A stretch of 64,000 nt of DNA from Guillardia theta CCMP2712. Its lineage: Eukaryota; Protista; Cryptophyta. Positions 2,249-37,427 of this stretch are shown here, one piece after another. The notes beneath the pieces are model-generated. The model ran no database searches and was not told the DNA's origin. It saw only the letters and a program-made list of their open reading frames with translations. The stretch's first letter is position 1. Each line of letters starts with the position of its first letter. The stretch lies in the NCBI RefSeq assembly GCF_000315625.1, contig NW_005434658.1, positions 587,139 through 651,138 of the forward strand, in the 5' to 3' direction. Made by a program: the position numbers and the translations under genes.

Positions 2249-5200
2249 TCAGAACTTGAGGGCACAGAACAAAGCAGCAGCTCGCTTGATCCAAAACGAT
2301 TGAGACTTGTCTGTTGGTAATTCGATCATCAAGACGAAGTTGGTGGAATGCCCTGTGGTTGAGAGTGTTCCAGCGCGATCTAGGGTCTTGTACAAAGGAG
2401 CCTCGTAAATTGTCTTGTGATCTGTGGGAGGTTTGTCGTAGGCTGGTTTCAGCCAGAAGCAAGGAGCCTCTGAGAACAACTCTTTGGGGAGCGGGTCGCT
2501 CAGCAAGTGGTTCTCTGAATCCCATCGGCAGGATTCCATATAGAGACCATAGATGATCACCCCGTCCTCCGGCTTCTGAGCCGACTCAGCAGTGATGTCG
2601 TCACGAACCACGTGCTCGAAGCTGACTTTGTCGATCGCATACTGATACTTGCGAGCAAAGTTTTGCTTGGCTCCCGTCAGGAACGCTTGAGGGAAGTAGA
2701 AACCTGAAATCCAGTATGCCTCCTGATGCCCATCGTTGATCCATTTCTGGATGAAAGCAAGTCTTGCTTCGAGGTCGATGAGCCAGGACGCGAGAGGCTT
2801 GAGGCTAGGATATGCCTTCTGAGCCCACGCGTCTGGAACCTGATTGTTGAAGATTGAGGTGCCGATGGCGTCCATCTCTCCGGACATGGCGACGATGCCC
2901 TTGATGGCCTTGAGCAGAACCTTGAGCGTGGAGTTGATCACCTTGAGCATGGCGTTGTAGCGCAGGATCTCTTGGGTGAGAACAGTGTTCATCGACTCAT
3001 GGTAGTCTGTCGGAAACTTCTCTTGTGCGTGGAGAATATCCAGTGACGCAGGGATTCTGTTCAAGATGTCCTGTGCCTCCTGCAAGATCTGGTCATCTCT
3101 ATTCCCGTCTCCACTCGCAGACTTGGGCTGGCATTTGAGCAGACTAGCGAAGAGAGCGAAGGTCTCGTTCTGAGCACAGGTGATGTCAGCGTTCTCATGC
3201 AGGCCAAAAGCCTCAGGTGCTGGTGAGAGTGGGAAGCCTCTCACAAACTCAACATACTCCTCCACGGTCGCGAATTCAGGAGCATAATAGATCCCAGACT
3301 CAGAGAACTTGTAATCGCTCTCTAAGACTGCCTCGCAGGTGAGTCCTCTCACTATCGTGTTGAGCAACCTCCTATCTTTATCATCTGTCACCCTCCCACC
3401 ATAATTGATTTCTGCCTCCAGGAACTGCAGCACTGCCCATGGGATTTCCTCGTACTCATTCAGGAACATCTGCAACTGTTGCCGGCAGCAATCTAAATCT
3501 CCTTCAGCAAACTCATACAGGATGTTCCACCCCAGAGGACCGAACTTGCGCCTGTCTTGTAAGACCGCGTGGAGAAAGCAGATTCCAAACAGAAGTTTCC
3601 TCCACTCCGTCAGCTTACTGCACTCACTGAGATAATTCCCTTCGAACTTCAAGTAGGTTGAAATCACGTTTGTACGCAGACCGCTGGGCGGTTCCATCAC
3701 CATCTTGGCTCCGTCTTGCAGTACAGACGCCGGGAAGTTGGCGGAGGGCATGCTCGTCAACCACAGCCGGAAGTCTTTGTGCACCGTGTCAGGATCCAAG
3801 GTCTCGATGATCCTCTCCATGGTAGGCATCCAGCTAGTGGCGAGATGACAATTCTGCAAGAGGACCCAGGACCCTCGATCTTTCGCCTCGTTGATCATCT
3901 TTGCCGCTATCGGACCTTGTCCTTGACCCAGAGAAATGGCATCGAGCTTCTTGCCAAACCCCTGCTCCTCTGCAAACTTGAGGAACGTTGCGGTGGGGTC
4001 TGCACCGGATGAGAGCACGAAGATGAGGGGGGTGGTAGCTGACGAGTCCATGTAGACAGCTGCCAGGTCGAAGGGAGGAGTCTCAATGAACTGTTCTCCC
4101 AGAAGCTCGCTGACGGTTTTTTGTATCCCTTGGATGCATTTGTCAGGCCGCAGGGCCCGCAGCAACAAACATTTCTGTAGAGATTTCCACTGCCATGGTT
4201 CAGGAATCGGTTCATCTTGAGGAGCTAGAGAGTCGTAGATCCTCTTGAAGCTGTCGAGGTTCTGAGCAAAGTTCTCGTCCAGCCCGTGGAAGTTGGGATA
4301 CTTTGCCAGGTTGCTGATTTCGATCCACGCGTTCTGAGGGAGCCACTCAGGCGCAGGGTTAGGATTGCTGGTCTGCACGGAAGTCGGGCCAGCAAGCAAG
4401 TAACGGAACTCAGAATGATCCAAGTTGCCATCGCCATCTTCTATGCGGGTGTAAATCAAGAACGAAAGCATAAGCTTGTGCCTTTCGAAGAGACTGCGGC
4501 AGCAATTGATGTAGATGGAGTACGTGAAGTAGTCAGTGATGTTCTGCAGTCTGATGTCGAGGTTGCTATCGCTGGCGGCATTCTGGATGCCTCTTCTGTA
4601 GAGACTCACAAACCAGCTTAACGAGTACTGGTACATGGGATCGATCGCTGACAAGTCCGCCACTGCAAAGTACAGAATAGCTGAACGAAAAGCGACCGGT
4701 TGGTATTTCTCTCTCGTTTCGTCGATTTCTTTCTCTGTGCTCTCGGCCTCCTTCAACTTCTCTTCAACTTCTGTCGACGTCTTCTTTGACTCAGACAGCG
4801 TGTTGATCAGAGTTTCATCTTCAAGAATGTCTCCTGTCGATTCAGCTAACAGTTTGAGAATGTTGCTCTCGATTTCAGTCATTTGTTTGACCATCGCCGC
4901 GTTGTTGATGACCAACTGGTCCTTCATCTGAGCGAGATCGGGCCTCTCTTCTTGCACAACAACTCCAAGCAGCTGCTGGATCAGTCCAGCCTGTGTGATG
5001 GCGAAGTTCAACAGGGTGACCTTGACAGCTGTCTCAGGGGTGTAGTATGGATTCCTCAATTTTGTTGTCATGTAGAAGAGAAACTCTTCATGGTAAGGAA
5101 TGGCTGAATCTCCAAGATTGATGGTCAATTGACCGCCAGCCTTGTAGACCTGCTTGAGCAACAACGGCTCTAGGGACGCATCCAAATCTTCGTGTAAGTT

Positions 5201-8200
5201 TTCGAGAAGCACCGGTTTCCCGAACCGAATCGCTCCTTCGAGGGTCCGCAAGTAATCCTTATCGTTCAACTTGATGACTGCTAGGCCATCGGAGTGATGC
5301 CTGTTCTTGATCCATTTGTTTGCCTGTGTCTCAGGATCAATCATCAGAGGCCATCTCCTTGCTTTCGACACTATGATGCCGTTCTCAGTCGAGAGCCTGT
5401 CTGCAGGCAAACCCTCTATTCTCCATTGGCGGACCAAGACTGGGTCTTCTAAGACGCTGATCAAATCGCAGATCTTGGAATGAGGTATCGAGAACTCTTT
5501 CATGCTCTCTTGCCATATCGAATAAAGCTCATCACGGTACTGCCCGGTGAAGGCTCCCAAGTAGCCTATCGCGCCAGCCGCTGAGAGCACGTCTCCGACC
5601 ACGTTCTTGAAGTCTATCTCGAACTGCTTCACTGACTCCTGCCACCGGCTCCTTTCCCCCCCGAGACCTCCGATGAGCTTGTCCGCCCTGACCAACTTCA
5701 ACGCGCATAGCTCGACCTTGTGTGCTAGCTCACTCTTCTCCTTGACCGCGTCGTTGAACTTGGCCTCGAGCTCCGCTACCCGGTCCTGCACTTCCTTCAA
5801 CTCTTTCTGCGCAAGAGCTAGTTTTGCAAGGGTTTCATCCAGCTCTGCCTGAGCTTCAGCAAGCTGCCTCTTCTTGGGTTCGACCATCTTGGCCACATGA
5901 TAGTATTTGTTCATCGCCAAGACCCAAAGACATATGGATGTGCAAGCCTTCGACACCTTAGCTACGGCTTCAGGAGTGAAGTCAGGGTTGTTGGCGAAAG
6001 GCTCGATCTTCTTGATCGTCGTGTCTTTGATGTTATCTTTCTCATAGTTGAACAAAGAGTCGAGAAACTTTGTGGGGTCAGCCAAAACCTAAAATGAAGT
6101 TTGTCAAGGAAGCACAAAACGTGTTGAATCAGGAAGACCTTGCTCTTTGCAACGCCCCAATAATCATCAATCTTCTTCATTGGGTCGTTTGGATCCTTGA
6201 CCTTCTCAGGCTTGTACTCGAACATGATGCAAACAGCTTCCATCACCTGGAATGAGAGTCAAACATGCACAGGACAAGCACTTGACTATTCTCACCATCT
6301 TTACTCCAGCTGGAGGGTTTGATAAAGCCTTCACCTCGACAATGTCATTCCTGTTCAGACTCTTCAAGGAAGCGACAGCAGCATCCAAGGCAGGGAGAGC
6401 TTCGTCTAGATCACGTTGCGCGTCGTCTGCAATCGTCTTGGTGGCTACAGCCTTCTCGTTCGCCTTCTTCTCTTCTTCGGCACATGCCGCCTGGGTGATC
6501 TCGGCGTCGGCTTTGTCTTTGGAAATGACCTTCATGAGGTCTTCCACCTCCTGTCCTTTCTTCTCTAAGATCGGCTGTAGCTCGCTCAACTCCACCTGCA
6601 TCACAGATACCATCTCTGCTGTGCTGATCAGCTTGTCCAGCCCGATCTCCAGCCTTTGCTTCGACCGTTGGACTTCTTGCTTCTTGAGAGAATAGAGCTC
6701 TTTGTACGTGATCAGCAACTCGAGGTAACTCGTCGGAGTGACATGATTGTATCGACCGAGTTCCGAGAGAAACTTGGCTGACATCTTCTCTACACTCATG
6801 TGGATTCTGGTACACATATCATACACGCCTTGCCGAATTTGCTGTGATTCAAAATCGATGTCGGATAATTTTTGTTGCGCAACGGACTCCAAAGCTTCAT
6901 CAGGCCACTCCGCAAACCAATCGAGCGAGCAACAATTCACAAGGGCTGGATACATCCTGAGCCGAGTCCTGAAAGCATCGCCGACGGGGCTCATAGCAAG
7001 GACCACGTGCAGATTACTGCGAACCCTAGTGAGGTATTCTGCGTAGAGAGACGCTTTCGTTGGGGCGATTCCCTTTGCCTGGAGAACCGGACGCATAGCT
7101 GCTCCGATTTCTTCTAGGGTGTCGTTCCCGTACATGTTGGCAACGTCGCCGCTGTTTAAGATGCCATTAATGTCTTCCATGAAGGACTCTTTGATGATTT
7201 GCGTGTCCGTGAATAAGAATACTATCTGCTCGTTCTCCACACCTGCAGCCAGCAGGCATTTCTTCAAATCTTCCCGCCATTCGTTCTTTCCGTACCCTTT
7301 GGTGATTTCGATAGAGATGCATTTGAATTCTGCAATGAAGGCAGCCAGCCGTGTCAAGCTTTGCCTTCCGCTTCCACCAACACCAAGAAGCAAAGCATTG
7401 CCGAGAGGAGTTCGAATGATTCGACAGATCCTTGAAACATGCTCAATTGCGTCCAAGAACATGACTAAGTTCATCTTCTTGGTAGTCTCTGCATTGTAAT
7501 CATCCAAATATTCTTCCATCACCTTTTGCAGCTTTCCAAAATCCTCAATCCACTGGTACCGCTTGTTGTCTGTACCAGGATTCATATAATCCCCGAAGAT
7601 CAGCCTGTTGCTGCCGATCAGCTCAGTGTAATCTATTTCAAAGTTCTCTTGAAGCTGCAGAGAAAGCAGTTTTCTAAACCATTCTCTATCTTCGTCGTTG
7701 ATGAGTCGATCAGAAAACACTCGCATACATTCGTGTATCCAGATTCTGCAAACATCTTGAAGTGTAGTTAATGACTTAACATCCCCCATGAGGACTCCCT
7801 GGAACACCTTTGACAAATCTCTCAAGTTGAACGCATAATGTGCTTTAGCAGGTGTGGGCAGCAGCTCCTTCAACACGGAGGAATAGACAGCATGAGTAGC
7901 TTTCACAAACTTTGGAACAACGTCTCCGAATGTTTCCATGTGATTCGTAAAGTTGTGAGCAAACCATCCTGACAAGATGGTTGAGAAGATCAAGCTCAAT
8001 GAATCGTAACCCATCTCAGGGAATGCCAAGAAGTTCAAGTGCCGCATGAACCTATTGGTCAGGGCTACTCTACCGCCACCGGGAGGACCCATCACTCCAC
8101 ATAAAGTAACATCCACGATGTTTCGAAACTCAAACGTTTTCCTGTCGTACCAACCTTGGTGATCAAACCATTGACGAATCAATTCAATGGGCGGTTGGGC

Positions 8201-11200
8201 CCCGTACACTTCCTTGGCAGGCATGTTGAGGTCGTCGATCACAAGGACGAGCTTCTTCCCTACTGGCGGGCCGAAGATTCCCTTCCTCCGCTTGTCCATG
8301 GTGCCGTCAAGAACATCCTGTGTCTGATTGGCAGAGGTAGATGCTGAGAACGCCATGAACTTCGGAACATACTTCTCCGGCATTTTCTTTCCAACTTTTT
8401 CATTGACAACCACTGATTTTCCTGTGCCTGTCTGACCACAGCAAAGCACGTTCACATCGTTTCGAAGGAGCAAATCAAGCACATGAGAAGATCGAATGGT
8501 ATCAACCGTAGGCACAGCAATGTTCTCGAAGCTTGTTTGCATGTCCAAAACAAACTTCTCTGTCGTTTCTAACCATGTTACCCATTCGTAACTTCTGAAG
8601 GAAAACAAGAAATCATAACAAGTCGTAACACCGTCCTCGAGGGATGGCATTTTGCTATTGAGGTTTGCTGAAGCAACGCTTTCCTTCAGCCATGAGTTAA
8701 ACTTGGATCTTCCAGCATAATCGCATGAGGCTCCAATGGACCAGATGAGGGCGAAGAAGAAGGACTCTGAAACGATTTTAGCTGGCTCCACCTTCCTTTC
8801 GTCCTCTTCTTCTTCCACCCGTGCAAAACATGTTGCAATTTGACAATCGATCAACCTCAACAAGCTGTTTACAAGGTTATTGTCCACAGTTTGAGCAACT
8901 TCGGTGATATTTCGACGGACAAATTGCAAGGCAGGTTCAATAAAGGTAGACATGAGATGTTGAAACTCCTTCTCAAACGGCTTGAACTTTTCATCTAATC
9001 GTTCCAACCAGGATTCGTACAAGACAGTCACTCCAAGCGCAGATGGCTCCACAAAGATCATTCCGCATCTACTGACAGTGGCCGGAGAAGCTACAGCAAG
9101 ATCCTCAACTTCAAACTGCATGCAGATGGTTGGCGACAATTTGATTATTTCACCACTGACAAGACACAACTTCTTGTTATCATCCAGAACAGTGTTCATG
9201 CTCTCAATCCAGATGGCATCCACAGGGCCGTCGCAAACAATCCACTTCTTGTCTTCCGTCTCCTCGTTGGTGCATTGCCTCACGATGGTAGAGAGGATGC
9301 CGTCAGTCCACTCGTGCGTGTTCTCGTCGAAGCTTCCGTACAGCTGACCCATGGTGATCGACTTGGGGTTGATGATCAACCTCTTGGTGTGAGTAAAGCC
9401 GTCTATTCCCGCACACATTGACTGGGCCTCTGCCAGGATCAGGTCGACTTTCGTCTTGCCGCCCCCTGCAGGACCAACGAGCATGAGGCCGTGCCTGACC
9501 GTGGTAGTCTCATACAGCTGAATGCACTTGCTCGTGAAGGCCTCGACAGGCTGCAGGTTGTTTTCTTTGCTTCTGGCATGGATGGCTTCCATCAGCTTGC
9601 CGTATTCTCTCGTGGGCTCCTTGGTCCCCGGAAAGAGATCGCTGATGATGCCTTGGAACAAGATGAGGTCGTCCCTCAGAAACTTGGGGCGATTGACATC
9701 GAGAAGAGCTCTCATCACCAGCAGCTCTTCGTCGGCGTCAGGTTGAGCTCGTTTGAGCAGTCCAGCTGCATTGATGACACTCTTGACTGCACGCATACCG
9801 AAGTCATAATGATCCTGAGAGGAGAGCTGCTCAGATGAAAGCTGGAAGGTGCCCACCATCTTCTTGCTTGCAGGCCTTGGATCACCAAATCCAAATGAAA
9901 ACAGACTGATCTCTGCAATGAGCGCGTAGTCTGGAACCATCATTGCCACTGGCCTAAACAACGCCTTGAGATTATCAGGCAATTCAGCTCGGCCAGCATA
10001 TCCAGGATTCATCTGCACAGCAATCAGCCATCAACGAAAGGAGAAGTTCAGATCAATCTACCGTGATGAAGACTGCGTTGGCGGGATCTAGATTGATTTC
10101 TGAGCCCTCGAAAGTAAATCTGGGTAACCTTGCTCTCACAGCTTTCTGAATGGAGATGATTTGCTGGGCAATGACCGACAGCACTTCTACGTTAATCCTG
10201 ATAAGAGAGAGTCAACGACCACAGCTAAAGCCGGTAAACGAATCACCTGTTGAACTCGTCAAAGCAAGCCCACGCTCCAGAGCTTGCAAGCCCCTTGAAG
10301 AATTTTCCCATTGCAAGATAGTCAAGGCCATCACTGCAATTGAACACGACACACTGCTTAGCAAGTGCTTTAGCAAGATCCTTAGTGGTTTCAGTCTTTC
10401 CCGTCCCTGCTGGTCCCTGCGGAGCTCCTCCAAGAAGTAGATCCATGGCACCGGTGAGGGTGATATAGCAGCGATCAGTCAGAGGGGTGATGACTAGTCG
10501 GGGGGTGTTGCCGAGGTACTCCATTCCATATGGGAAACTAGCTTGAATCTGCCTCACGATGAACCCTGGGCTACCTAGACCTGGCAAGTCCTCTTGATCT
10601 TCCCAGTAGTACCTGAGCTGGCTGACCCAGGAAAACTCTTTTGGGCTTGAGACTCCATCCTCACACATCTTCAAAGTAACGTCTCGAGCATGTACGTCGA
10701 TCACCATCAAGGCTCCGAGGGTCAGCGCTATCAAGTACGATGGGTTCGAACGAACAATGTCCACCAAATCCTGTAACTGGAGAAGCATCTTTTGATAGTA
10801 CTTACGCAGTCCCTCGTTTCCGCCCTGCAGCATCGCTTCCTCCATCTCGATAGACCAGTAATGCTGGCTTCCAGCCAATACCATCTGCCCTTGCCATTCC
10901 TGCACCCACTGTTTCCTTCCGCCAGTGTTCGTCAGGTAATCTTCTGCAGACGCCTTACAAATGGACTTCACACTCTGCTTCATCATTCTTTCCACTTGCG
11001 ATAACCAGTTCTCAACATTTCCCGCCACAGGCACTGCAGTGTCAAACGAAGCCTTTTCCTTCTCGGCCGAATTCATGGCAGTCCACAACATCTTACCGCT
11101 TTCTTCCTTGAAGTCGAGACGATCAATCGCTTCAAAACATTTTCTGAGATGGGGTTGAACAGCCAAAGGATCCCTTGTCTGACTCAAAATCTCGAGTAAT

Positions 11201-14200
11201 TCATCGTTTGACAAGAAATAGAACCTTGCAAATCCAGAACGTTTGGTTTCCAAGTAATCAGATAGTCCTTTCGCCACGATATCGAGAAGTTTGTTACAAT
11301 CCACGAAGGTGTGCAATATTCTTTCTGTATTGCATAACTGCAAAGGCTCGGAATTCTTGTTGGCTTCTGCAGTGAATTTTCTCCAATTTCGGTCTACTGT
11401 TTGAAATCTTTTTGACTCAGTGGGCAATTGCTTCTGAATATCATCTGAAGCAAAAATTGGTTCCAAATACATCCAATTTCGCTGGCACGCAAGAAGTTGT
11501 TCTAGAATATCAGAACACAATTTCAAAGCATGTTCCCATTTTGAGATGCGTTCTTCGAACGGTTTCTTGTAGGGAGAAAATGTCATGCCTTGAGTCAAAA
11601 CAATGTGATCATCAAGTAATTGAAAGATCTCGTCCCAGCCACCAAGAACAAATGTCCCAGTGTCTCTGTATGCTTTTACGTGCAGCTCCACTCCTTTCCA
11701 ATCTCTCTCCATCTTATTCAATGCTTCTTCTATAGCAAATTCTTTGCCTGCAATGTCACAAACCTTCACTATGGTTTCCATCCTTTCGTTGAGCTTTTGC
11801 TGCTCGATACCTATCCTCAGCGTGAATGAATCATCAGGCTTTAGGTCAAAACCAAGGAGCTCGGTAAGATTTTGCCAGTGCCGATCTCTCATGCCAGGCT
11901 GCCTCAATGCCTGCACCAGAGGTATCAATTCTTTGAATGAATCGATCTGCGATTTCAAATTGTTCGCAGCATCCAAAAGTTCTGGAAGTTTTCCTTCAAA
12001 AAACTTGGTGCTCTTCAGGATTACTCTAAAGCAGTTCTGTGTTACCCTGTCCACTTGCTCTGGATCTATCTCATTGAATTTTCCGTCCATCCAAGTAGAA
12101 AAGTTGCTTTCCCACTCCCTTGCAGCCAACCAAAAATTTGAATATGGCTCAAAGGCCTTCTGAACTTTCTGTAGCTCATATGGCATTTCATTGTAGTTGG
12201 TGATGGCCCTTTCTAGCTGGGCTTCTCTAGAATTGAAAAGCTGGGCTTGTGCCATCGCATTTTTCAATTTTTCGTTGATTGACATCACCGTCTCTGAAAT
12301 CTCTTTCGTTTTCGATAAATCTGAGTGCTTCGAGAAATTCGAAACAAGGGCAGAGATTGAGCTCAGCTCATTTGCAAATTCTTCTTGTGCTTCAAGCATC
12401 TCGTTCTCAAAGATCTCCTTATCCGACTTGATCATCGTGTTGGCAAACTCCATAGCTTGAGAGATTTTTGAGAGAACTCCGAATGTGTTCCACCTTCTCT
12501 TGGTATCATCTCTGGTGTATTCATACTTGTAGTCGTCAAGTAGCTCATAATTTTGCATTGTTCGAGCTATCTCCTGATGTATTGCATTTATGGATTCGGG
12601 TAAATGATGAATAAAGTCTTTCAATTCGGTCAATTCCTCAATGCTTTTTGAAGGATTTTTCAACTTCTTGACAATCTGATCACATTTCTTCATATGTTCG
12701 TCGCACAAGTCCCTTGTTTGGGCAGCTACCTGATGCAGAAAGAGATCTATCATTTTTTGATAGTCATTTTGCAATGCAACTCTCAAGCTCTCTAAACTTA
12801 ATTCGAAGGCTCCAATTTGCATAGATAAGGGGATTCGGTTCTCAATGTCCGCTTTAGAATCTACAAGATTGGTCAATTTCTTCTTGAGCACGTCACTGCT
12901 AGATGCATCCTTCATGAATTCGGCCACATACTCTTCGGGATTCGTTGTCAAGATTGACCGAAATTCACCAAACTTGCCCATGTACTCTTGCATAGGTTTC
13001 AACGATTCCTGTAGACCATTTTTCATCTTGTCTCTCAAAGTTGATGGAAGACTTTCAGTAGGATGTATGCTGGCCAGAATTGGTTTTGAGCTCCAAAATA
13101 TTTGATCGACAACCATTGGTTCGATTTGCGGGATATCTGAAATAGACGAAAGGGCTTTGTCAAACAAGGAGAGAGGCATTTCAACAACTTGCTCGAAAGG
13201 TGTTGGAACTCCATTGCTCCCGATGTCCACCGTTCCGTCTTGATTCAAAATCAATTCTAATTTGAAGAGCGGCCATTTCAATTGACTGTCAACCAAGCGA
13301 TGATTTCTGACGGTCGAGATGTCGTGTACCTCCACGTCATATGCAACGGCACTGCAGATGAAGTCCGCAAAACTAGTCAGAGAGTCCTCTGCCATTGACC
13401 TTAGCGTATCTTGCATCATAAAGTTTATCATGGTCATGAATTTCTTTAGTTTGCTTATGTCGTAAACCTCACGTTTGGTTTCATTTAGGTTGAACCATCC
13501 TTTTCCAACATCTTTCAATCCGTTCCTGAGACTGTTCTTCAGTGAAGTCAACCAGGTGTCCTTTAGATATGCGGAGGTCTGAGAAATAGCTTGAAGCTCA
13601 AGGTGCTCGAATTCATCTGGTTTGGTGGTTTTGTTTGGATGCGGCGCGAACAAACTCATCGAAAGAATCTTCTGATTCTCTGTTTTGGTTTTGACAATGC
13701 AATTGATCAATTCTGTCTTGGTAAGAAAAGAGTTGAAATTAAAAAGACAATATTGTTGTGCCCAATCATGCGGAGGAATATCTTGCAAAACACCGTATTC
13801 TCGACTACTATGGAAACGTAAGGGTGGTACGTAAACATTTCGCATCATTTCGTTGCTGTTGTCAATGTCATACTGTGAGTCCAAGGTAATCCGATTCATA
13901 GTTCTTGAATACTCTAAATTCATTTCATCAACCAGTCCAATGGCATCCAGACTCTTTCGGTCAATCTTTCCTGAATTTGAAACTAACATCATAACTCTAT
14001 TCAGCTGTTCCAGTGACAGATTCGAAACGCCTTCAGTTGGCATGTTATCAACAAAGAAGTTGTACATAAGCTCTTTCATGTTCAAATCCCGTATTTTCAG
14101 AGCTCTTGCAACTCGCCTGGCGAATAGAAACGGATCTTCCGCAAGAAACATTATCAGTAAACGAGGAAGAATTTCGATTTCATCATTATCAGCCCAGCGA

Positions 14201-14899
14201 AACTTATAGGTATCGTTGTCAGCTATCCTGTCCATCACTTTGCACGGTCTCCAAAACCCTCCTGATGCATGAAATGCGCGAGCAGGTAAGAAGTTAAACT
14301 TTCCATTCACGGAACCAATTTCTATCCATTCATCCCACGTTCTTGGTTCAAGATCCTTGTCGTCAAACACGCTACGATAAAGACATCAATGAAGGAATTA
14401 CGAATGTGCAAGGTACTTTCACCTCAGAGTTATAAAATCTTGATCATGGACAGCATCACTAAGCCGCTCTTTCGTCACACCCTCGCTTTCCAGTATTTTC
14501 CTAGACGATCAGCATGAGTAGAATGAATTTCATAAGTCATCATACGAAATGTCTTGATTCGCAAACAGCTTCCGTCTCCTATCGATTTCCACTTTCAATG
14601 GGACTTTGACTGAGGCCGTTACTTTGGGATCCAATGACCGAGGGGGAAACAACTCGGCAGAAGGGTCTTGTGGAAAGAAAAGATCCTTGTCCTGCAAGCA
14701 ACTCAATGTCCAGCTGTAGCCAATCATTGTGTGACCTGTTGTGAGCTGGAATGAACTTCATTATCATTTTCTCCCAGTTTGTTCAGCTTTATCTCATCAT
14801 AACCATTTATTTCTTGGTTGCAAGTTTGAACTTGCTTGCTGCAATGACAAGTCATCATCAGAATGAAGCAACTGCCTGTGACTTCTCCTTACCGCGCAT
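2249..14899 (-). CDS. DNAH1: Axonemal single-headed inner-arm dynein heavy chain, DNAH1-like (~4100 aa)
   Basis: Long ORFs 10243-14370, 6206-10018 and 2249-6085 are joined by short GT-AG introns (~10198-10246, ~10013-10061, ~6247-6294, ~6088-6138). P-loops are GPAGTGKT, GPAGGGKT, GQTGTGKS and GVGGSGRQS, followed by the stalk and a C-terminal LSTTGHSTNF. N-terminal exons KVEIDRRRKLFANQDI and FDDKDLEPRTWDEW resemble the DNAH1 N-terminus. Putative first exon ATGCGCG|GTAAG at 14899. Confidence 0.93.
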
Positions 14900-27339: not shown

Positions 27340-29985
27340 ATGGAGGAATCCAAAAGGGGCAACGAGGCTCAGGACAAGCCAGAGGAGGAAAGAAGCAAAC
27401 TCGACAAACCGCCAGAATCTGGGAATGATGTTGCAAGATCAGAGCAGAGAAAAGGTTCTACGAGCGCCCCGCCTGTTCCTCCTGGGCCATCAGGACGGAG
27501 CAAGCAAGACCTGAAGGAGGCATTATCTATGAATATCTTTCAACGAGCAAGGACGGAGATCGCCAAGTCGAAACTCCATCTGACGGCTGGAGCAACGAGG
27601 ATACACGGAAGGTTCTCCACGTACAACAGTCAGCGTCCGCAAGAGGTTGTATCTCTGGCGGGGTTGAGTATCAAACTTATAACCTGCGGGAGCGACCATG
27701 TTCTAGCTCTCGATGCAAGTGGGAAGATACGAAGTTGGGGCAGGGGGGAATCCGGGCAGCTGGGTCATGCAAGCTTCAGCCACTCGAGCACTCCTTCCAT
27801 CATCGATGAGCTCGCAAGTCAACGGGTGAAAGAGGTCGCTTGTGGAGTTGCGTTCAGTGCAGCCTTGATGGAGGGAGGACAGCTGTACACATGGGGTTGC
27901 AACAGGTACGGGCAGCTAGGTCAAGGCGATAGAACCTCCTCTGCAATACCTCGCATGCTGCCATCCATGAACCACCGCCATGTCCACTTGATGGCATGCG
28001 GTGCAGCCCATATCGTCGTGTTGACTACATCAAGGGATGTGTACACTTGGGGCAACAACAGCTACGGACAGCTGGGACATGGATTCCGCAAGAAACATTG
28101 TCTACAGCCAAAGTCTGTTAGAGTTATGAGCGGGCTGGACATCAAGCAGATCGTAGCAGGGGAGAACCATTCGTGTGTGATGACATCTTTCGGAGACATT
28201 TACACTTGGGGACGAGGAGATTTTGGACAGTTGGGACATGGGGACATGGAGAGCAAGGACATCCCAACTCTCTTGTCTCCTCTCGACCCAAAGACGCAAG
28301 CCTCACTCATTGTTTCTGGTGCAGACTTCATCATGGCTATGACATACTCAGGAGCTGTGTATTCGTGGGGTAGAAACTGTTTCGGCCAACTGGGGCATGG
28401 GGTGGATATGCATTATTCAAAGAGCAATCGGTTTCCTTCAGATGTGATATCGTAAGTGCTGGAGCAAGAGATCATTGGCCTCAAGGTGAAGTTCGTTTGT
28501 TGTAGGCCGAAGATTATTTCCTTCTTCGCTGCCAGTGAAGAGCATGACGCAATCTCCCTCTCTTCGATTTCCTGCGGGTGATATGCTTGTTAGTGCGACA
28601 TACTTGCGTCTGACGACCTCTTGAACGACAGGAGTCATCATGTCCTGGCAATCACAGAGAAGAAAGACACGCTGTTTGCCGTAAGTTTTGAACCTTGACA
28701 TTGATCTCGCGAGTAGATGACTCGTTGTACAGTGGGGGCGCGGTGAACATGGTCAGCTTGGTTTGGATCCACGGGATACATCTTTTCGTCCAATACCGCA
28801 GGTGCATATTTCCTAATGACTTCCTGTTGAACTGATGTTGGATTTGTTTCTTCACCTTCCACAGGAGGTGAAAAAGATGAAAGGGATGATTGTCTTGGCG
28901 GCGGCATGCAGCGAGAATCACTCGGTAGTGGTAGCGACAATGCCAGGATCGGGGCCCAAAGGAGATATGAAGGTGTTTTCGTGGGGTAGAGGATCGTTCG
29001 GTCAGCTCGGCTATGGGAGGTGATGATTGTTGAATGCGTAAGTCTTCCTCTTGAGACTTCAAGACAGTGGGAAAGTGCCAGTGATGAAGGAGACTGTCCA
29101 AGATAATCAAGGTAAAGGAAACTTACACCCTTACTGTCTACCTGACACATCGCCAGGGGCGAAGGGGCTGCTTTGGAAGAGAAGCACTGTGCGCCCGACA
29201 ACTTCATTGGGTTTCGCCGATGCGACAAAGAAAGCTTCATGGAAGTCCTCCACAGATACTTCTTTCAAAGTCTTGCCCGCGGGGTAACTGACCAGCTCCT
29301 TGAGTTCTTCGCCTGATGCAAGTCAACAGCAAATCTTCTACTCGTGTTCCTCAGATGCTTGTTGAGCGTCCAGCAAGCTGTGAGCCAAGGCTGTCATCGA
29401 TGTACAAACAGTCTGTCAACTCCATGGAGAGCCTTTCAAGCTCAGCCATGCTACAATCTCAGCATAGCCAATGGTGAGTATGATACCAGGACCAAGTCCT
29501 CGATACTGATGAAGAATTTAATCCAGGGAGCCGACATTGCAATCACAGGACTCGTTCACCCGAATAAGCAGCCTGATAACAACGATGGATACGAGCAAAC
29601 TCGCACAGAGAATCATGCTCTCGAGGAAGCGCGACAGGAAGCAGCCGATCAAGTACCCATCGACCCCAACTCGAGCTCGCAACCCTCTGATGCCTCTTGA
29701 CAGGGTGCATCCCGATGACCCGGAGCCCCTCAGCATGGCCGAGTTACTGAGGTGATTCCGAAGTATCTCAAGATCAGCTGACAATCTCTTAGACTCGTCG
29801 ATGAATACAAGGAATCCTATTGAAACAATAATGCCGCACAAGGTAAGAACGCGGCGTCCAATTATGTTATTGCCCTTTCACTAACATGGTCGATTAGAGA
29901 TATCGCGAGTTGTTGCAGAATAAGAATGCATCAGTCTGTCGTGATATGTTCAGAATGATCTTGTTCCCCATAACCTCGAGATGAA
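27340..29985 (+). CDS. RCC1-repeat (beta-propeller) protein with C-terminal extension
   Basis: Repeated VACGxxHS/FS...G-x-VYxWGxN/GxxGQLG motifs: five repeats in ORF 27340-28455 and two more in exons ~28717-29020. The 3' end is approximate. Confidence 0.85.
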
Positions 29986-30146
29986 AAGATCATCAATCTC
30001 AAACCAAAAGGTTTAACTTCGTAGTCGAAGCAGAAAAAAGTAAAACATGACGAAATAGCTCAAGTCCTTTAGATGTGGAGGAGCGTCTCCGCATTCATTC
30101 ATAGCTCGAAACAGAAAAACTATCCCAAGATTCGGCGAGGAATCAT

Positions 30147-30547
30147 TTAAGACTTCCACTGGTTAACAGCCTCGACGTACTTCTGCATTGCCTCGTCCTT
30201 GGACATGCCTGAGAAAAAACGTTATTGTGGAGCATGCGAGACTTCCAGATAATCTCACCTTTGTTCTTGTTCCATGCCTCCCACTTGGCTTTGCCAGAAA
30301 AGTCCAGCATTCCTGGCTTGGCGGTGTTGCAATCCCCTTCCTTCACCTGAACAAATACAATCAGGTTACGTTGCGACCAGCTACTGCAGCGTTGAACATT
30401 CGCAAGAGGACGAGGAAGGTGTGTTTCTACCTGCTTGAACCACCCATAGAGGAGCAGCTGCTGGTCCTGAGAGATCTTCTTCAGCCCATCGTTGCTGCCC
30501 GACGCCGCCAGTGCTGCAGCTGCTTCGAAATCTTCGGCGAGGCCCAT
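30147..30547 (-). CDS. ACBP: Acyl-CoA-binding protein (3 exons: 30547-30431, 30346-30259, 30208-30147)
   Basis: [15 protein letters not shown]...[11 protein letters not shown]|[30 protein letters not shown]|[19 protein letters not shown] matches the canonical ACBP signature. Confidence 0.95.
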
Positions 30548-31306
30548 GATTGTGTCACCACAGAGATACACAGGGGGTGGGGTGCTTCTAATAACATACA
30601 AGGACGGGTAGTCCTCTGTGTGGAAAGTAGTCAATGGACCCCTGGTATGAAATATAAGTTGGGGGAGGGGGGGGTGAATCATCATTCGAGTTCTCAGTAT
30701 CACTGATGCAGTGCAGTGCCGGCCGGCCCGGCGGCCAGGGCCCGGCCCGGTCTGAAGAGTCTACAGGCTCGCTTTACTCAAAGTTTAAGTTAAAATCAGT
30801 ACGAGGGCAATAAGGAGAGGAGAGGAGGCTTGACCCTAACACTGCCGCACTGACCGTACGGCGAGAAGAGAAAAGACAGCGAGGACCAACCCTCCGCATC
30901 CTGCCTACTGCTGTCCTCCAAACTTAACTGATACATTCACTTAACTCCGCCGCAGGACCATTCCCCCGCGCCATGCCCATGATGTAGTCCGACGGTCGTG
31001 GTGGCCGCCGCCGAAGGAATGATATGTCCTTTTAATTTAACTTAACTTCCAGTGAGTAAAAGGCTTGATCATCCGAGTCACTTTACTGGCCCGGGTCCGG
31101 AGTCCGGGGCTAGTCATGGTAGGTAAGAAACCGTTGAACTCACTACCTAATGTCAGTTGAACACTCGACCGTGAGAGGAAAGAAAATGAAATATAGGAGG
31201 AAGGTTTCAAATGTGAGCTGGAAAACAGGTAGTCACCTGCTGAAATCATATCGTTGCAGTACGATTAAGGTAGGAGCTCTAGGCAAGACGTGCTTCACGT
31301 TGGACG

Positions 31307-34300
31307 ATGGCGAGGACGAAACGACTGACCGAGGACCGTGACGACTCGAGGGACAACCGTAGATCGAAGACTCCCAGACTTTCAGCCTCGGAAGAAGCCA
31401 ACGACGATGGTGATGAGACCGAAAGTGACGAGGAAACAGATGTGAACGAGCATGTGACGGGAATTGGGATTTTGAGCAGATTCCGTGGGCTCCTCCACAA
31501 GATTTCTTCTGAGCTAGATGATGACAGCGACCCATCACTCGCTCACGTCAAAAGTGATTGTTCCAGCATACAACGCTGGGTCAATGAGCGGAAGATATTG
31601 TTTGTCGGACCAAATGGAGTGGGAAAGAGCTGGATTATCAACATTTTGTTGCTCCTAACGACGGAGCTTCCAAGTACATATCGGAAGGTCAACGAAGGAA
31701 AAAAACCAGTCAAGACAGCAAAGGGCACATTAGATCCTTTGATGCAAGATGGATATAGCTTTCTTCCTCCTGTCATCATTCCTGAGTCAACTCCATCGAG
31801 GCATAAAGCCGGATCAGAGATGTTCAAGGCCCTTGCTGAATACTGTGTAAACCCGAGTTGGAACGCCTCATGCTGTGAGTATATCTTGCCGAGTAAGGAG
31901 AGAGGAACAGCCACCACGCCTTGCTTGATTTCAGTGGTCTACAGCCCAGTGTTCTGTCTGGTGATTACTTTCGAAAAGGAAGAGAAGCTACGAGAGAAGG
32001 CTTTCCAATGGGTCCTAGCAAACCAACAAGTTCTGGATGGAGAACGAGATCGCAAGGATTTGAATGGTCCCGATTATCGATGGAAGCACGAATACTTCAA
32101 ACAATTAGTGAGTGAAAGTCAGCAATTTGAAGAAGGCGACGCAAGGTTCAAAGACATTAAAGACCAGAATGCTCTTCAGCTCAAAAAGATTGTCAGTTCG
32201 AGAGCTGGAAAAATTCAAATCTACACAGGTAGAGGGGTTGACTTGCATGCTGAGCGAGAATTTATTCGCGATCAGCTAAATCAAGTTGTAATGGAGGAAT
32301 ACAGAGAAACGATTTGCATGGTAAAGAGCTTGCGTGTTGGTGTCCCGTCATCACTCGTGAAGGGTGGGGGGATGATCTCTGATTGTCCAGGTACTTGAAT
32401 ACTCCAGATGTCCTGCCTGACTTGATGTCATTCACAGGGTCAGGGGACACCAATGCCGTCCGATCCAATGAAATGCAGAAAGCCATCAACGAGCATGAGA
32501 TTGTGATCGTGGTATCCAACAGGGCACTCGACAGCAGCAAGGAAATCTGGACTGAGGTGAAGAACTCAAATTTCTTCTCGAACTGTTTCAAATATCCCCA
32601 TGAATATCATCTCATCGTTCTACACTACAACGAAAGGCAACAAAACAGGAATGATCTTGAGAGAACGCTTGAAGGAGACTTTCATGTCGAGGATAAAAAC
32701 AAAGAAAATATGAGGACAAGAAGCAGGGAGCATATACTTGAAGCTTTCAGGAAACTCGACAGGTCAGGGCCAGAATCTGATATAAACGAAGAGTGCTTCA
32801 CTATTCTGAATATTTCCCCAACTTTATTCGCTTCGATGGAATTGAATGCATCTTTTCGTTTGGAAAAAAAGGCAGAATTGGATAGACTGGTTCAGTTCAC
32901 CGAATGTGGTGAACTCTTTGGAATCTTGAACTGTGCCAATTCTGCATCTTTGAGACAAGGCAAAAAGATCATTTCAGACGCATTGGAGGAATTGGAAAGA
33001 TGTTTCATGAATCAAGTCAGAGGCAAGTGGGAAACATTTCCTATTGATGACTTCAAGAAACGAACCAGGGGTTTCTTGTCTATGATAAGAACGCAAAATA
33101 CAGTACAAATGGACAAATTCCTGAACTTTGTATCAGATTGTATTCAGGACCTGACAAAAAGAATTGAGAAACTTGTGGAAAGGTTTTTGATCACCAACAA
33201 GAATTTTCTGGACAGATGCTCTAGAAGATCGAAAGAACAATGGAGAGATTACCCTTCACAAAAGCTGAGCCAGACTATCGAAATAATGAATATAGATTCT
33301 GCTTTCCGGGACCGAACTCTACAAAGGAGAATGCAAAAGCTTGTACTAGGGCCTCTGCGCAAGAAGAGTATTGAATTCGATCCCATGATACGTAATGTTG
33401 ATGAGGCTCTATTGGAATTGAATGGAAAAGTCGTGAAGGAGATCCGTTCATTCATTACAATATGTTACGAGCAGTTCAGCAATGATTCTTTATTCAAAGA
33501 CATGTTGAATGAATACTGCAAGTTGGTCTCATTTAATTTGAATGATAGGTCAAAGAGGTTTTTCTGCTTCGGGCGAAAATCCTTACACATCAATCAGCTT
33601 GTACTTGACGGGACAATATCTTGGAAAGCTCAAGAATCAAGTTTGAAAAAGATGATGAAGGAGTGGTTTCAGGACAATGCAAAAGACGCTCGAAGTCGGA
33701 ATCAGAAGTTGTTACCTCCGAGGACACCTGGTCAGGCTATCAATGATTTTGAAGAATATATCGACAAATTTTTTCAATATTTTGCCTCTGAATTGCAGGC
33801 TAAGGTGATCAAACAAATCACCTACCAGAAGGAGCAATTGAAAAAGCATTGGGTCGCTTTTGGAATTCCCAAACACAAGAAACCCACTCCAAAACAGAAT
33901 CAATCGCTTCAATATGCACTGTTTGCATTTCCTCAATGGCTTGAGGAAAACTGTGAGCCGGAAATGATCAAAAAGGTGGGTATTTCAGGATCAACGACCT
34001 CGCAGCTGAGCAACTATCGAAAGAGCTTAAAAGAAATCTTTCCTTCAGACGACATTCAACAGATCAAAGAGAAGCTGAAGCATGAAACGCTGGAGCAGAT
34101 TGCAAGAGATCGAGTTCTTCGGGTGCTTGATATGCACTTTGATGATCGTGAGGGGCCGATTGTCAATATCCCTTTGAGACCTGCTCACGATGCTGTTCTC
34201 AACATCGATCAGTTTTCTTCATCACTTTTCTTCTCGGTCGATCCTCTTGAGGTAACGCAAATGAAGCAATCATTGAGCGATCGTGCATACAAATTGTGGC

Positions 34301-35367
34301 CAGATGATGGTGATGGAGACGAAGATGAAAACAAGCAAAGTCTTTTCCTGTCCGTCGCTCATCAGCTCTGGGGAGGGTCCAAGAAGAAGATCGTCGAAGC
34401 TCATGCCTACCAGCTTCGTCAGGCAGTATGTCTGACCATTTCAGAGCAGAATGCAACACATGAACTCAGAGCTCGTTTCATAGATCGATACAGGGATGTC
34501 ATCCCGTCGTCATTCAGCGATTGGCACAACTGTTGGAAAGAGTATGTCGAGCTGCAGGCTAACTTATCCAGGACCGGCGACATGCTGTGCCTGCGTGTGA
34601 TCTTTGATTGCGTTCTCCACATCCAAGTCAACGTTCTCGTGTGGTGTCCGGGAGATTCTCCCTTTTGCTTGCGTTCAACGGAAGCACATCAATCCGCCTA
34701 TCAGCTTGCAGTGATTGGCGTAGACGATGCTGATGATTCCAACAGTCAGTTTGTGTTTCGTTCCGTAGTCAAGCTGGAAGATGCAGCGCTCGAGCCTGAA
34801 AGAGGTTTGAGACATGTCTTACAGCCTTCTGACCAGGACAAGCTGGTTTTGATGATTGGTACCTCCTTGGCCATGAATCTGTCTCTTCATCAGAAGCTTT
34901 TTGATCACCTGGAGAAATATCACGGGCAACAAGTTTCTCCATGCGTTCCACGTTCTGTTCGAAAAGCTCTTCGCTCGATTTCAAATAATAGCAGGGATTC
35001 AAATCGAAACAAAGCAAAAACAGCGCTGAAGCACATAGAGACTATCCTCGACAAGTCGTCATTTTGGTTGCTGGGACTCGAAGAGCGGTACGAACAGGAG
35101 CTGAACATGCGTTATGCGCTCGCCAATGTCAACAAGAGGCCGAAGCATCTATTGAAGTTGTTGAGGTCACGGGGTAACAAAGTCATTCTCGTTGCAGAAA
35201 GCAAAGATCCGCTGCACGCTCAGTGCAAGGACGAACGACTTCCTGTGTTAGAACCTTTCGACAAAACTGGTACGGGACTCTTTCAGATCATGAAAAAATC
35301 TGGGGGGACTGGAAATCCTCAACTGAGTTTCACATCTGCTCTGCTGGAGCAAGCAACAGCGAAGTGA
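31307..35367 (+). CDS. Dynamin-superfamily (NUGGC/SLIP-GC-like) GTPase fused to degenerate OTU and PIN domains, 1337 aa, single intron 32391-32437
   Basis: G1 ILFVGPNGVGKS and G2 GTATTP are present. Splicing a 47-nt GT-AG intron joins the ORFs into G3 DCPGSGDTNAVR. A long helical region follows, then OTU-like QSLFLSVAHQLWG...LRQAV...YVELQANLSRTGDMLCL and PIN-like LVLMIGTS...CVPRSVRKAL...AKTALKHIE...KVILVAESKDPL...LPVL. Confidence 0.75.
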
Positions 35368-35613
35368 ACGAGCTGGTCAGCTTGTTTGGAGTGATAAGTT
35401 TCCAACTGAAACACTGACAGGGATGAAATTGAAGAGTTGAAAGCGCTCTAATGCAACGCTGCCAACGTATTGAAAGCCGCGGAATCCTTGGCGAAGACAA
35501 GGACGCCTTGATATGATTCATTCTACCATACAGCTAATTGATTGAAACCTGCTGCCTAAGGGGTTATGCCTTGCCGTTTATCTTATAAGAGCTCGTTTAA
35601 TAGATCCTCAGTC

Positions 35614-37427
35614 TCACAGATGCAAGTTGCTGCTGCCGCTCCTGCTGCCGACCTGCCGGGAGTTTGGGCGGCTCGGAGACTTTCCACCTGGCCTCGAGAT
35701 GACCATCGGGATGGTATCCGCATCCTCCAACTTATTCGGTGCCTCCTCCTCCTGAGCCTTGCTCGTCCAACTGCCCTTGCCAGAACCGTTGCTGCGATGC
35801 AAGTTAGGACAAGAGCAAGGGGGGCGAGAGCAACGACTCACCCCTTGATCGAGGCGAGCAACGTAGATTGCGTCTGCTGTAGTGATGCCCTCATTTGCTG
35901 CCTGATGGACGCCAGCTCCATCCGCTTCTGAGTGGCTGGGGAGACGTTGCTCGAGAGCTTCTCCCTCGATAGCTCGCTCAGCTGACGATTCTTCGACGGG
36001 CTTCCCGTCTCCAACGTCCCCTGTGACGGTGACGTGGCAACAGTCGATGGTCTCTCTTGCTCAGCGTTGTGGGGCTCCGTCGGCCCCAGATGGAGCTGCT
36101 TGCTAACATGATGCGCCGGGGCAGACCGAGGAACTTCACCTTGTGCGTCTCCTCCATGCAGCGATGAGGAAGGTCGGTAGTTCACGGTCCTTCGCATCAG
36201 CAGGCTTCCCTTCCTGCTGCTACCAAGGTCGCGATACACAGAGACGTCGAGGGAGTGGCCGAGGAGCTGTCTCGGAGCAGTGATCCACGGTAGCACATCA
36301 CATGGGCTCAGGACGGTCGTGAAACGAATTTCTCCCGCCACGGACCTGGGGAAGAGAATCTTCCGGCCCTCGTTGCACTCCAGCGCGAAAGGAAACTCGT
36401 ACTCGGGCTTCGAGCTCAGGGAAGAACCCACGATCTCGACGATGAAAGTTCCTCTGATGTCTATCTCGTCGCCATCCGGCAGTCTCATCTGCAGGAAGTA
36501 GAACTCCGCATTCTCTGGATTCTGCAGGCTGTCAGCGACATTGAACCGGGCTGTCTGCTCCAAGTTGACGTTCACTTCTTGGTTCTCGAGGTCGTGCAGG
36601 GAGTTCCGGTGCGGCTGTGTTGTTGACATTCTGCGCTGGGGTTTGTGCATAAAGTCCTTCAACTCAGCCACGTTGTCTTCGTCCGACTCTAGCTCCTCCT
36701 CCTCAACCTCCAAGCTCTCCACGTCGTAGTCACCATCGGCACTTCGGCCATGTCTTGATGGGAAGTGATCGAAGACCGGCCCTCCCGTCCACCGCATCCC
36801 TCCAGCAGCGTGCACCTCTATCTCCCTCGGGTTTGCTGATCCCGTGGAGCTGAGGGGCGTTCGTCTCGCGCTCGCGTCATCAGCCCGCGTGCTCTTGAAG
36901 AGCGGCTCCATGTCCCCCGCCTCGTCCTCCACTTTCAGCAAGCCTGCCTCACGGTAGAGCCTCTGCTTGAGCTTCTCTCTGCGCTGCTGAAACTCCGAGT
37001 CGATCGCTTCTCGCAGCTGCCGCTCCTTCCCTGCCGTGTACGACACCATCTCCTGCGACTGCCTGCTCGGCCCCACCAGCCTGCCAGCAGAGAGCAGACT
37101 CTCCCGCTCAGCAACGTTTCTGTTCACTGTCTGCAGGCGCTCAGTGCCGGCAGTGGAAGCTCGCACATCGTGCGACTGCTCCTGCACGTTGTTCTCCATG
37201 TTGTTCTCCATGTTGTTCCCCAGCATTGCCTCGCGCCATTCGCCGGTTCCTTTGTCTATCGTCTTCACAACATCGCCGGGCTCCAACACGTCCGCATAGC
37301 GATGCCTGTTCGACCAAGATTTCTTCTTGGACTGAGTTGAAAGTGGCTTGTAAAAGTTTCTTACGTTCTTCTCCCTCTCTTTAATCTCATCCAGTCGGTT
37401 GATCACCATGGTGTACGTCAGCACCAT
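35614..37427 (-). CDS. Uncharacterised protein (coiled coil, acidic tract, possible beta-sandwich domain)
   Basis: 529-codon ORF plus a probable terminal exon 35614-35790 after a GT-AG intron. A GTAAG donor at ~37432 suggests further upstream exons, so the start is uncertain. Confidence 0.55.

Follow-up and report, generated by a model that had tools for sequence, protein, structure and literature searches.

A dynamin-superfamily protein of the cryptophyte Guillardia theta with a non-canonical G4 site and a probable OTU-like domain in its tail

The closest described counterparts of the head of the protein considered here are the bacterial dynamin-like proteins (DLPs) and the mitofusins, represented by SynDLP (9em9/7zw6), Campylobacter jejuni DLP1/DLP2 (5owv), BDLP (2j68/2j69), IniA (6j72), MFN1/MFN2 and Fzo1. 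A further point of reference is NUGGC/SLIP-GC, a large eukaryotic GTPase of the Dynamin_N type that lies outside the classical dynamins; we know of no OTU- or PIN-like tail in it. For the tail, the relevant described proteins are the OTU deubiquitinases (PF02338; Otu2, OTUD3, Otu1, OTUB1 and viral OTUs) and the PIN domains of the PIN_4 and SMG6-Nmd4 kind. Our subject is GUITHDRAFT_104368, a gene located in a 64,000-nucleotide stretch (hereafter the window) of nuclear DNA from Guillardia theta CCMP2712, whose product is recorded at NCBI as a 'hypothetical protein' of 1283 residues (XP_005836953.1 / EKX49973.1). We propose that it encodes a 1337-residue protein with a dynamin-type head that lacks a canonical G4 motif, a tail with a probable OTU-fold domain devoid of the catalytic Cys and His, and a putative degenerate PIN-like end, an account that, taken as a whole, we favor on balance. 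A literature search found no paper joining dynamin, OTU, PIN domain and GTPase, and broader searches returned nothing pertinent. All positions given below are those of the window, and all features of the gene lie on its plus strand.

The head, at about residues 85-545 (31559-32988, intron included), is well supported by family alignment, by the modeled fold of a homologue and by language-model features as a dynamin-superfamily G domain of the BDLP/mitofusin type with large insertions and a non-canonical base-recognition motif. The G1, G2 and G3 motifs of the window protein are intact, and they are conserved across 17 aligned relatives. The P-loop GPNGVGKS (residues 101-108; 31607-31630) follows the family pattern GxNGxGKS[WF]IxNLLL, with its N, G and K invariant in the family. 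The candidate for G2/switch I is GTATTP (residues 200-205; 31904-31921), which precedes strand beta2 in the homologue model and corresponds to the family pattern LPSxxxGxSTTP with its invariant TT; the ATTP string itself was placed at residues 201-204, or 31907-31921 when quoted as the motif ATT(P). The G3/switch II segment DCPG-SGDTN (residues 359-367; 32381-32454) is split by an intron and fits the family pattern DxPGxxDxxP. At the G4 site the guanine-specificity motif N/TKxD is not present: in its stead, at the end of strand beta5, we find LHYNER (residues 423-428; 32620-32637), an instance of the family pattern YxE[KR] with invariant Y and E. A further motif specific to this family, LHAEREFIRDQL (residues 313-324; 32243-32278), lies between the second and third of these motifs.

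At the level of sequence, the affinities of the head are faint. The Dynamin_N domain (PF00350) is detected below threshold in eight relatives (E 5.5e-5 to 5.9e-3, 17-24 bits against a cut-off of 27), and the family profile retrieves mitofusin (E 0.07) and IniA (E 0.23) from the Protein Data Bank (PDB). Scans of both open reading frame (ORF) pieces against Pfam, NCBIfam and PADLOC gave only P-loop noise, and PDB sequence searches with the single pieces and with family profiles A5, A7 and A8 returned no significant match. The Atlas language-model features of the N-terminal piece place it with Dynamin_N/MMR_HSR1 clusters at 0.94, with 185 shared features. An AlphaFold2 (AF2) model of the homologue P0008 from Baffinella frigidus (residues 105-560), computed with a 17-row family alignment, attained a predicted local distance difference test (pLDDT) score of 82.9 and a predicted template modeling (pTM) score of 0.86. 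With this model Foldseek recovered SynDLP at E 2e-6, along with Campylobacter jejuni DLP1/DLP2, IniA, BDLP, mitofusins and Fzo1. The VIA search likewise ranked SynDLP at Z 16.2 (245 residues aligned, root-mean-square deviation 4.0), DLP at 14.1, MFN1 at 14.0, Fzo1 at 13.6 and BDLP at 12.7; as a group DLP1/2, MFN1/2, Fzo1, BDLP and IniA scored 12-14, and generic TRAFAC GTPases (Era, EF-type) about 11. An Atlas shape search with the same model gave Dynamin_N clusters at template modeling (TM) scores of 0.52-0.54, one of them, at TM 0.53, being named 'nuclear GTPase SLIP-GC-like'. The initial annotation, which saw here a dynamin- or NUGGC-like GTPase with intact G1-G3 and no clear G4, is thus borne out at the fold level and in its motifs; its likeness to NUGGC extends to a shared fold class but not to sequence membership, and none of the 20 relatives that we found carries that name.

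The tail begins with a block at residues 975-1145 (34276-34788), delimited by family alignment, a profile test, Pfam and fold searches. It corresponds to a tail block shared by relatives P0008, P0035, P0015, P0018 and P0006 with the conserved features xSLFxxL, LRxxxxLxIS, GDExxL, VW/PG and xFRSV. A profile of four relatives, from which the window protein was left out, gave the window block 14.3 bits, compared with a maximum of 9.4 bits over 3000 shuffles. Because none of these 3000 shuffles reaches the profile score, the block is, as judged from the alignment, a real family domain that is homologous in five family lineages. Its sole Pfam match is OTU (PF02338), below threshold at E 0.14 and 13.1 bits against a gathering value of 23.3, and the blocks of the relatives have no OTU match in Pfam. 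In an AF2 model of the window tail the order of helices and strands fits OTU, and the TGDMLCL segment of the block lies in a helix. Foldseek returned OTUD3 as the first match to this model of pLDDT 37 (E 0.083), with OTUB2, OTUD5 and OTUD7B among the first 30. Independently of Foldseek, a VIA search through 48,161 PDB representatives with the same pLDDT-37 model placed Otu2 first at Z 5.3; its top 30 further include OTUD3, Otu1, OTUB1, Otu2 again, the TYMV protease (PRO), SnOTU, OTUD1 and a tick-virus OTU, each aligned over the same residues of the model. ESM-Atlas feature searches with the window tail and the Baffinella tail yielded no usable match, and an Atlas shape search with the tail model returned noise (TM ~0.25). 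From the Pfam and fold searches, each of them weak, we think it rather probable that residues 975-1145 adopt the OTU (papain-like deubiquitinase) fold.

The catalytic positions of this block depart from the OTU norm in the window protein and in several relatives. Ser996, within KQSLF (residues 994-998), occupies the position of the Cys, and S1131/Q1132 stand where P0008, P0035 and P0015 have a His. Among the relatives, the canonical Cys is found in P0006 and P0018 (in the latter without the His), P0015 combines a Thr with the His, and P0008 and P0035 have a Ser, with a Cys two residues upstream, plus the His. The degeneracy of the block seems to be a trait of the family and no novelty of Guillardia, since a clear canonical OTU triad is seen in no member examined, the truncated P0006 being one that cannot be judged. 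An initial reading of the block as a pseudo-OTU accordingly keeps the conservation of the block and the lead of OTU folds in the searches on its side, but the Pfam match is non-significant and the fold scores are low.

The C-terminal alpha/beta block (residues 1155-1320; 34816-35313) occupies the position of a PIN_4-like domain in the Baffinella homologue, where P0008:1245-1498 matches Pfam PIN_4 (PF13638) at E 3.8e-4 and 21.2 bits, just short of the cut-off of 21.9. Neither relative P0035 nor the window block has a PIN_4 match in Pfam. Collinear motifs run through the two blocks, with LVLMIGTS, VRKAL and VILVAESKD of the window protein opposite LYLILDAN, VRGEL and VVMVTDDKD of P0008; the GTS of LMIGTS is at residues 1169-1171 and VRKAL at 1202-1206. 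In this alignment, which is without statistical support, the Asp of P0008 is replaced by Gly1169, its Glu by Ala1205 and its DD by Glu1282-Ser1283. A Smith-Waterman comparison of the two last blocks gave a best z of 2.7, a value reached by 46 of 2000 shuffles, so that homology is not significant. The weak fold matches of the block include Nmd4, SMG6 and archaeal PIN domains. Whether it is a degenerate PIN-like domain is a question on which we are evenly balanced. The pseudo-PIN that had been suggested for this region draws on the near-threshold PIN_4 match of P0008 and the collinearity of motifs, but the homology is non-significant and HAD and BRCT folds fit equally well. Between the head and the tail, the middle region (about residues 546-974; 32989-34275) is AT-rich and the fastest-evolving part of the protein, with marginal similarity to relatives; we presume it to be a helical stalk or bundle.

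The 1337-residue product depends on a gene model that differs from the public one. Two plus-strand ORFs, at 31307-32398 (363 residues) and 32383-35367 (994 residues, 99% identical to the cluster of the NCBI protein), are joined by removal of a 47-nucleotide GT..AG intron at 32391-32437, which lies in phase 1 inside the Gly codon of DCPG. This leaves an exon 1 of codons 1-361 plus the first base of Gly362 (31307-32390), holding the N-terminal tail and the start of the G domain, and an exon 2 with the remainder of codon 362 through codon 1337 and the stop (32438-35367); the resulting coding sequence has 4014 nucleotides (1337 codons plus the stop) and reads DCPG|SGDTN at the joint. We verified the ORFs, the intron ends and the frame of this fusion as initially put forward, and GPNGVGKS, ATT, DCPG, LHYNER, KQSLF, GTS and VRKAL are all present where they had been placed, as are the remaining strings quoted with them.

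Comparative evidence supports the splice of 32391-32437 as real. The metagenomic orthologue L002/L003 (ERZ930071), at 94-96% DNA identity, differs from the window by three indels in all: a 2-nucleotide insertion in L002, which falls inside the 47-nucleotide segment, and indels of 3 and 9 nucleotides, which fall in coding sequence. A more distant relative on metagenomic contig L004 (protein P0010, ~33% identical) has a 49-nucleotide GT..AG intron that sits at precisely this site, behind the first base of the DCPG Gly codon, and the ORFs of relatives P0013 and P0007 end at the same point. The transcript-derived Baffinella frigidus protein (P0008; MMETSP) reads uninterrupted DSPGSGESN across the site. 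Introns of the dynein gene in the window, at 49, 49 and 50 nucleotides, set the local size norm. The NCBI model XP_005836953.1 has a 209-nucleotide intron (donor near 32229; 32228-32437) that drops residues 308-361. These 54 residues include the family-conserved GRGxxLHxDRxFIRDxL...DxPG, the family-specific motif described above and the switch II DCPG. We rejected the 209-nucleotide splice, which would delete the family-conserved LHxDRxFIRDxL...DxPG stretch, and for this reason the 47-nucleotide model is the better of the two. The public annotation of GUITHDRAFT_104368 thus appears to be wrong and should be corrected.

To define the family we compared residues 84-1283 of the NCBI protein by HMMER with the full set of 1.84 billion cluster representatives at E<=1e-3. 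This recovered 20 proteins, and not one bears a functional name; their matches all fall within the first ~520 query residues, which correspond to about positions 85-690 in the 1337-residue protein. They come from Baffinella frigidus, the choanoflagellate Mylnosiga fluctuans, four frogs (Xenopus, Spea, Leptobrachium and Rhinophrynus) and metagenome/Logan contigs. A second G. theta protein is absent among the representatives, which can hide cluster members, and there is no paralogue within the 64-kilobase window. Word-index searches of proteins yielded nothing beyond the protein itself, or P0008 and P0035; scans of metagenomes found no further relatives of the tail, and a scan of viral contigs found no relatives of the head. 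The family is very small, patchy and undescribed. Its C-terminal modules vary: an OTU-like module alone is found in Mylnosiga, OTU-like and PIN_4-like modules in Baffinella, and a GIY-YIG nuclease domain in P0019 of Spea bombifrons (XP_053314288.1, residues 836-918; Pfam E 7e-8), which may be a genuine effector module or the product of a gene model that runs into a transposon. In the metagenome that holds the orthologue, positions 816-3456 of contig L004 encode P0010 and a 525-residue downstream ORF, which share with the window gene the acidic N-terminus and the place of the intron; this relative would be a paralogue if its host is a Guillardia-like alga and an orthologue if the host is a different cryptophyte.

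Comparison with the metagenomic orthologue gives a ratio of nonsynonymous to synonymous change (dN/dS) of 0.37 for the whole gene, with 0.24 in the G domain, 0.59 in the middle region, 0.47 in the OTU-like block and 0.17 in the last block, which is the most constrained part of the tail. Nonsynonymous changes are fewer than under neutrality (binomial p 6e-8), every computable stretch of 100 codons has a dN/dS <1, with no sign of positive selection, and all coding-sequence indels relative to L002/L003 are multiples of 3. In a second isolate (L001) the frame is intact over the 976 codons covered, with 15 synonymous and 14 nonsynonymous differences. Expression of the gene is low: a raw RNA-seq run, of which ~6% was sampled, had 14 reads on it, and a probable RNA run gave two low-depth contigs (34221-34747). 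Taken together, it is well supported that the gene is real, selectively maintained and weakly expressed.

Two further patterns were noted in these data. Divergence from L002/L003 is mosaic: it is zero over 321 nucleotides upstream and the first 85 codons (30986-31600), almost zero over codons 901-1000 (34000-34300) and 4-6% elsewhere, which may reflect recombination between strains or chimeric metagenome assembly. The convergent neighbor, an ORF at 35838-37427 with a minus-strand transcript and without a Pfam match, is highly expressed. A minus-strand contig of the probable RNA run with a depth of ~1500 (35225-35500) ends at 35225, within the last 143 coding bases of GUITHDRAFT_104368, and an antisense overlap of these bases with the 3' end of the neighbor is possible.

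Several results weigh against the account of a dynamin-type head with an OTU-like and a degenerate PIN-like tail. The window protein itself has no above-threshold match in Pfam, Dynamin_N included, the best being the RsgA P-loop at E 6.6e-4 and OTU at E 0.14, and the fold matches of the head come from P0008, which is 24-29% identical to it. The AF2 model of the tail, from a 7-row alignment, is poor at pLDDT 37; all its fold matches are at Z <=5.3, under the VIA caution line of 8, and over its residues 216-391 chains of HAD, BRCT, EIIA and PIN domains fit alike at Z 3-4.2. Searches of PDB sequences with profiles recovered neither an OTU nor a PIN domain, and significance was reached neither by hhalign between the window and Baffinella tails (E 0.19) nor by the profile test of the last block against relatives (p ~0.1). 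The middle region, whose helical nature is a presumption, is relaxed, with dN/dS of 0.6-0.96 along it. The orthologue has a nonsense change at codon 888 (TAT to TAG at L003 1106-1108, equivalent to window 34015-34017), which may be a sequencing error, a strain or null allele or the start of decay. Finally, no RNA read spans the junction 32391-32437 in the one raw RNA-seq run and the one probable RNA run, where coverage is low, but four comparative lines favor the splice; the contigs that read through the intron belong to runs with even coverage of the intergenic flanks as well, and are hence DNA-like.

Were this account right, the protein would be predicted, by its likeness to BDLP and mitofusins, to bind and hydrolyze nucleotide, and it would, as in those proteins, self-assemble via the G domain and the helical middle region. 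The OTU-like module would be a non-catalytic binder, most plausibly of ubiquitin or a ubiquitin-like protein. The last module would have arisen by degeneration of the PIN_4-like domain found in Baffinella, with at least two of the acidic metal ligands lost; given that loss, it would serve for binding or structure rather than as an RNase.

An alternative is that GUITHDRAFT_104368 encodes an ordinary membrane-remodeling dynamin-like protein, active in fusion or fission of organelle or plastid membranes, with the tail being a lineage-specific helical and alpha/beta extension that is only superficially OTU- and PIN-like. Consistent with this, the nearest structures are all membrane-active DLPs, the OTU and PIN evidence for the window protein is nowhere significant, and the second tail block fits several Rossmann-like folds equally. 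However, neither a hydrophobic paddle nor a transmembrane-like segment is seen in the protein: over 19 residues, the highest Kyte-Doolittle means are 1.9 and fall in predicted beta strands. Moreover, OTU folds lead in three different searches, and a sparse and patchy set of 20 proteins in 1.84 billion representatives is unlike what is seen for a housekeeping factor of organelle division. We consider this explanation unlikely.

A role for GUITHDRAFT_104368 in conflict or defense is possible, the points in favor of it being solely the architecture, the patchy distribution and the differing C-terminal modules of the relatives. In its broad form, this idea posits an undescribed eukaryotic family of BDLP/mitofusin-like nucleoside triphosphatases (NTPases) with exchangeable effector-type tails that act in cell-autonomous conflict or defense, in which the dead OTU and PIN modules of the Guillardia member would sense ligands and trigger assembly of the GTPase; we rate it as quite unlikely. 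The initial annotation had offered a narrower form: the protein would be an oligomerizing GTPase of immunity, and its inactive OTU and PIN domains would act as sensors of, or integrated decoys for, ubiquitin and RNA, with giant viruses as one possible target. In its favor are the pairing of a P-loop NTPase with effector-like modules at the C-terminus, which vary from one relative to another, the patchiness of the family and the low expression of the gene. On the other hand, nothing ties the gene to infection and the viral contigs scanned hold no relatives; positive selection is not seen in any computable 100-codon stretch; descent of the decoy from an active ancestor is not evident, there being no examined relative with a clear canonical OTU triad; the PIN identity is uncertain; and the GIY-YIG domain of Spea may come from a transposon through a faulty gene model. 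This narrower form we likewise find quite improbable.

That the gene is a once functional dynamin-like/OTU/PIN protein decaying into a barely transcribed pseudogene, as its very low expression, the codon-888 nonsense change in a close relative, the relaxed middle region and the lack of catalytic residues in both tail modules might suggest, is very unlikely, given a 1337-codon frame that is intact in the reference and over the covered codons of L001, purifying selection that peaks in the G domain and in the last block, indels that are in frame only, and a nonsense change that is seen once, in a metagenome contig of low coverage, where an error or an allele of the strain could account for it.

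The surroundings of the gene are those of an ordinary nuclear locus. Its neighbors include a dynein heavy chain gene on the minus strand (2249-14370), with three exon ORFs of 1270-1375 residues (DHC_N2, AAA_6 to AAA_9, MT and Dynein_C), and an RCC1-repeat protein (27340-28455). Upstream, the minus-strand ORF at 30143-30703 has by eye a KWEAWN-type string, which we take to be typical of acyl-CoA-binding proteins. The center of GUITHDRAFT_104368 is the most AT-rich kilobase of the window, with a GC content of 0.392 at 33001-34000 against a window mean of 0.516 (standard deviation 0.052), in agreement with the AT-richer center described earlier. The gene had also been described as intron-poor relative to most of its neighbors, which is only partly true, since the dynein neighbor too has exons near 4 kilobases. 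Ahead of the G domain, residues 1-85 form a basic and acidic N-terminal tail: its start is basic and by eye resembles a nuclear localization signal, and its EEANDDGDE resembles the EDANDDGE of the Baffinella homologue.

What is new here is a dynamin-superfamily protein with an undescribed tail, the domain assignments of which are still soft. If they are true, the dynamin superfamily gains a small eukaryotic branch in which a head of the bacterial DLP/mitofusin kind is coupled to folds of the ubiquitin system and of nucleases. Such a branch would be a case for how pseudo-enzymes become binding modules on assembling NTPases, and for whether protists have dynamin-based surveillance comparable to that by Mx or GBP.

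Set beside the described systems, the protein is most like the bacterial DLPs and mitofusins: in the family model it has the same enlarged G fold (Z 12-16 over 200-245 residues), and it shares with them the G1, G2 and G3 motifs and a long region behind the G domain. It differs from them in its marginal sequence similarity, in the very long insertions between G1 and G2 and between G2 and G3, in having YxE[KR] for N/TKxD, in the lack of a paddle or transmembrane segment, and in a 360-residue tail with OTU-like and alpha/beta modules that is absent from those proteins. With NUGGC/SLIP-GC it shares the status of a large eukaryotic GTPase of the Dynamin_N type outside the classical dynamins, a fold similarity of TM 0.53 over 298 residues and a basic N-terminus. 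Yet the fold score is no better than that for clusters of bacterial DLPs (TM 0.54), and clusters of SLIP-GC-like proteins have Pfam Dynamin_N in 100% of their members, whereas the GUITHDRAFT_104368 family remains below the threshold of that domain. In the weak tail model, the features shared with OTU deubiquitinases are a helix at the site of the nucleophile, a helical lobe, a helix bearing GD/E and a four-stranded sheet that ends in xFRSV; unlike those enzymes, the block has Ser996 for the Cys and no His at the expected place, and scores 13.1 bits where 23.3 are needed. As for the PIN_4 and SMG6-Nmd4 PIN domains, the last block differs from them in having no Pfam match, in the Gly1169 and Ala1205 at the first two acidic-ligand sites and in fitting HAD and BRCT folds equally, and resembles them in its collinear motifs and in the C-terminal position that it shares with the near-threshold match of Baffinella.

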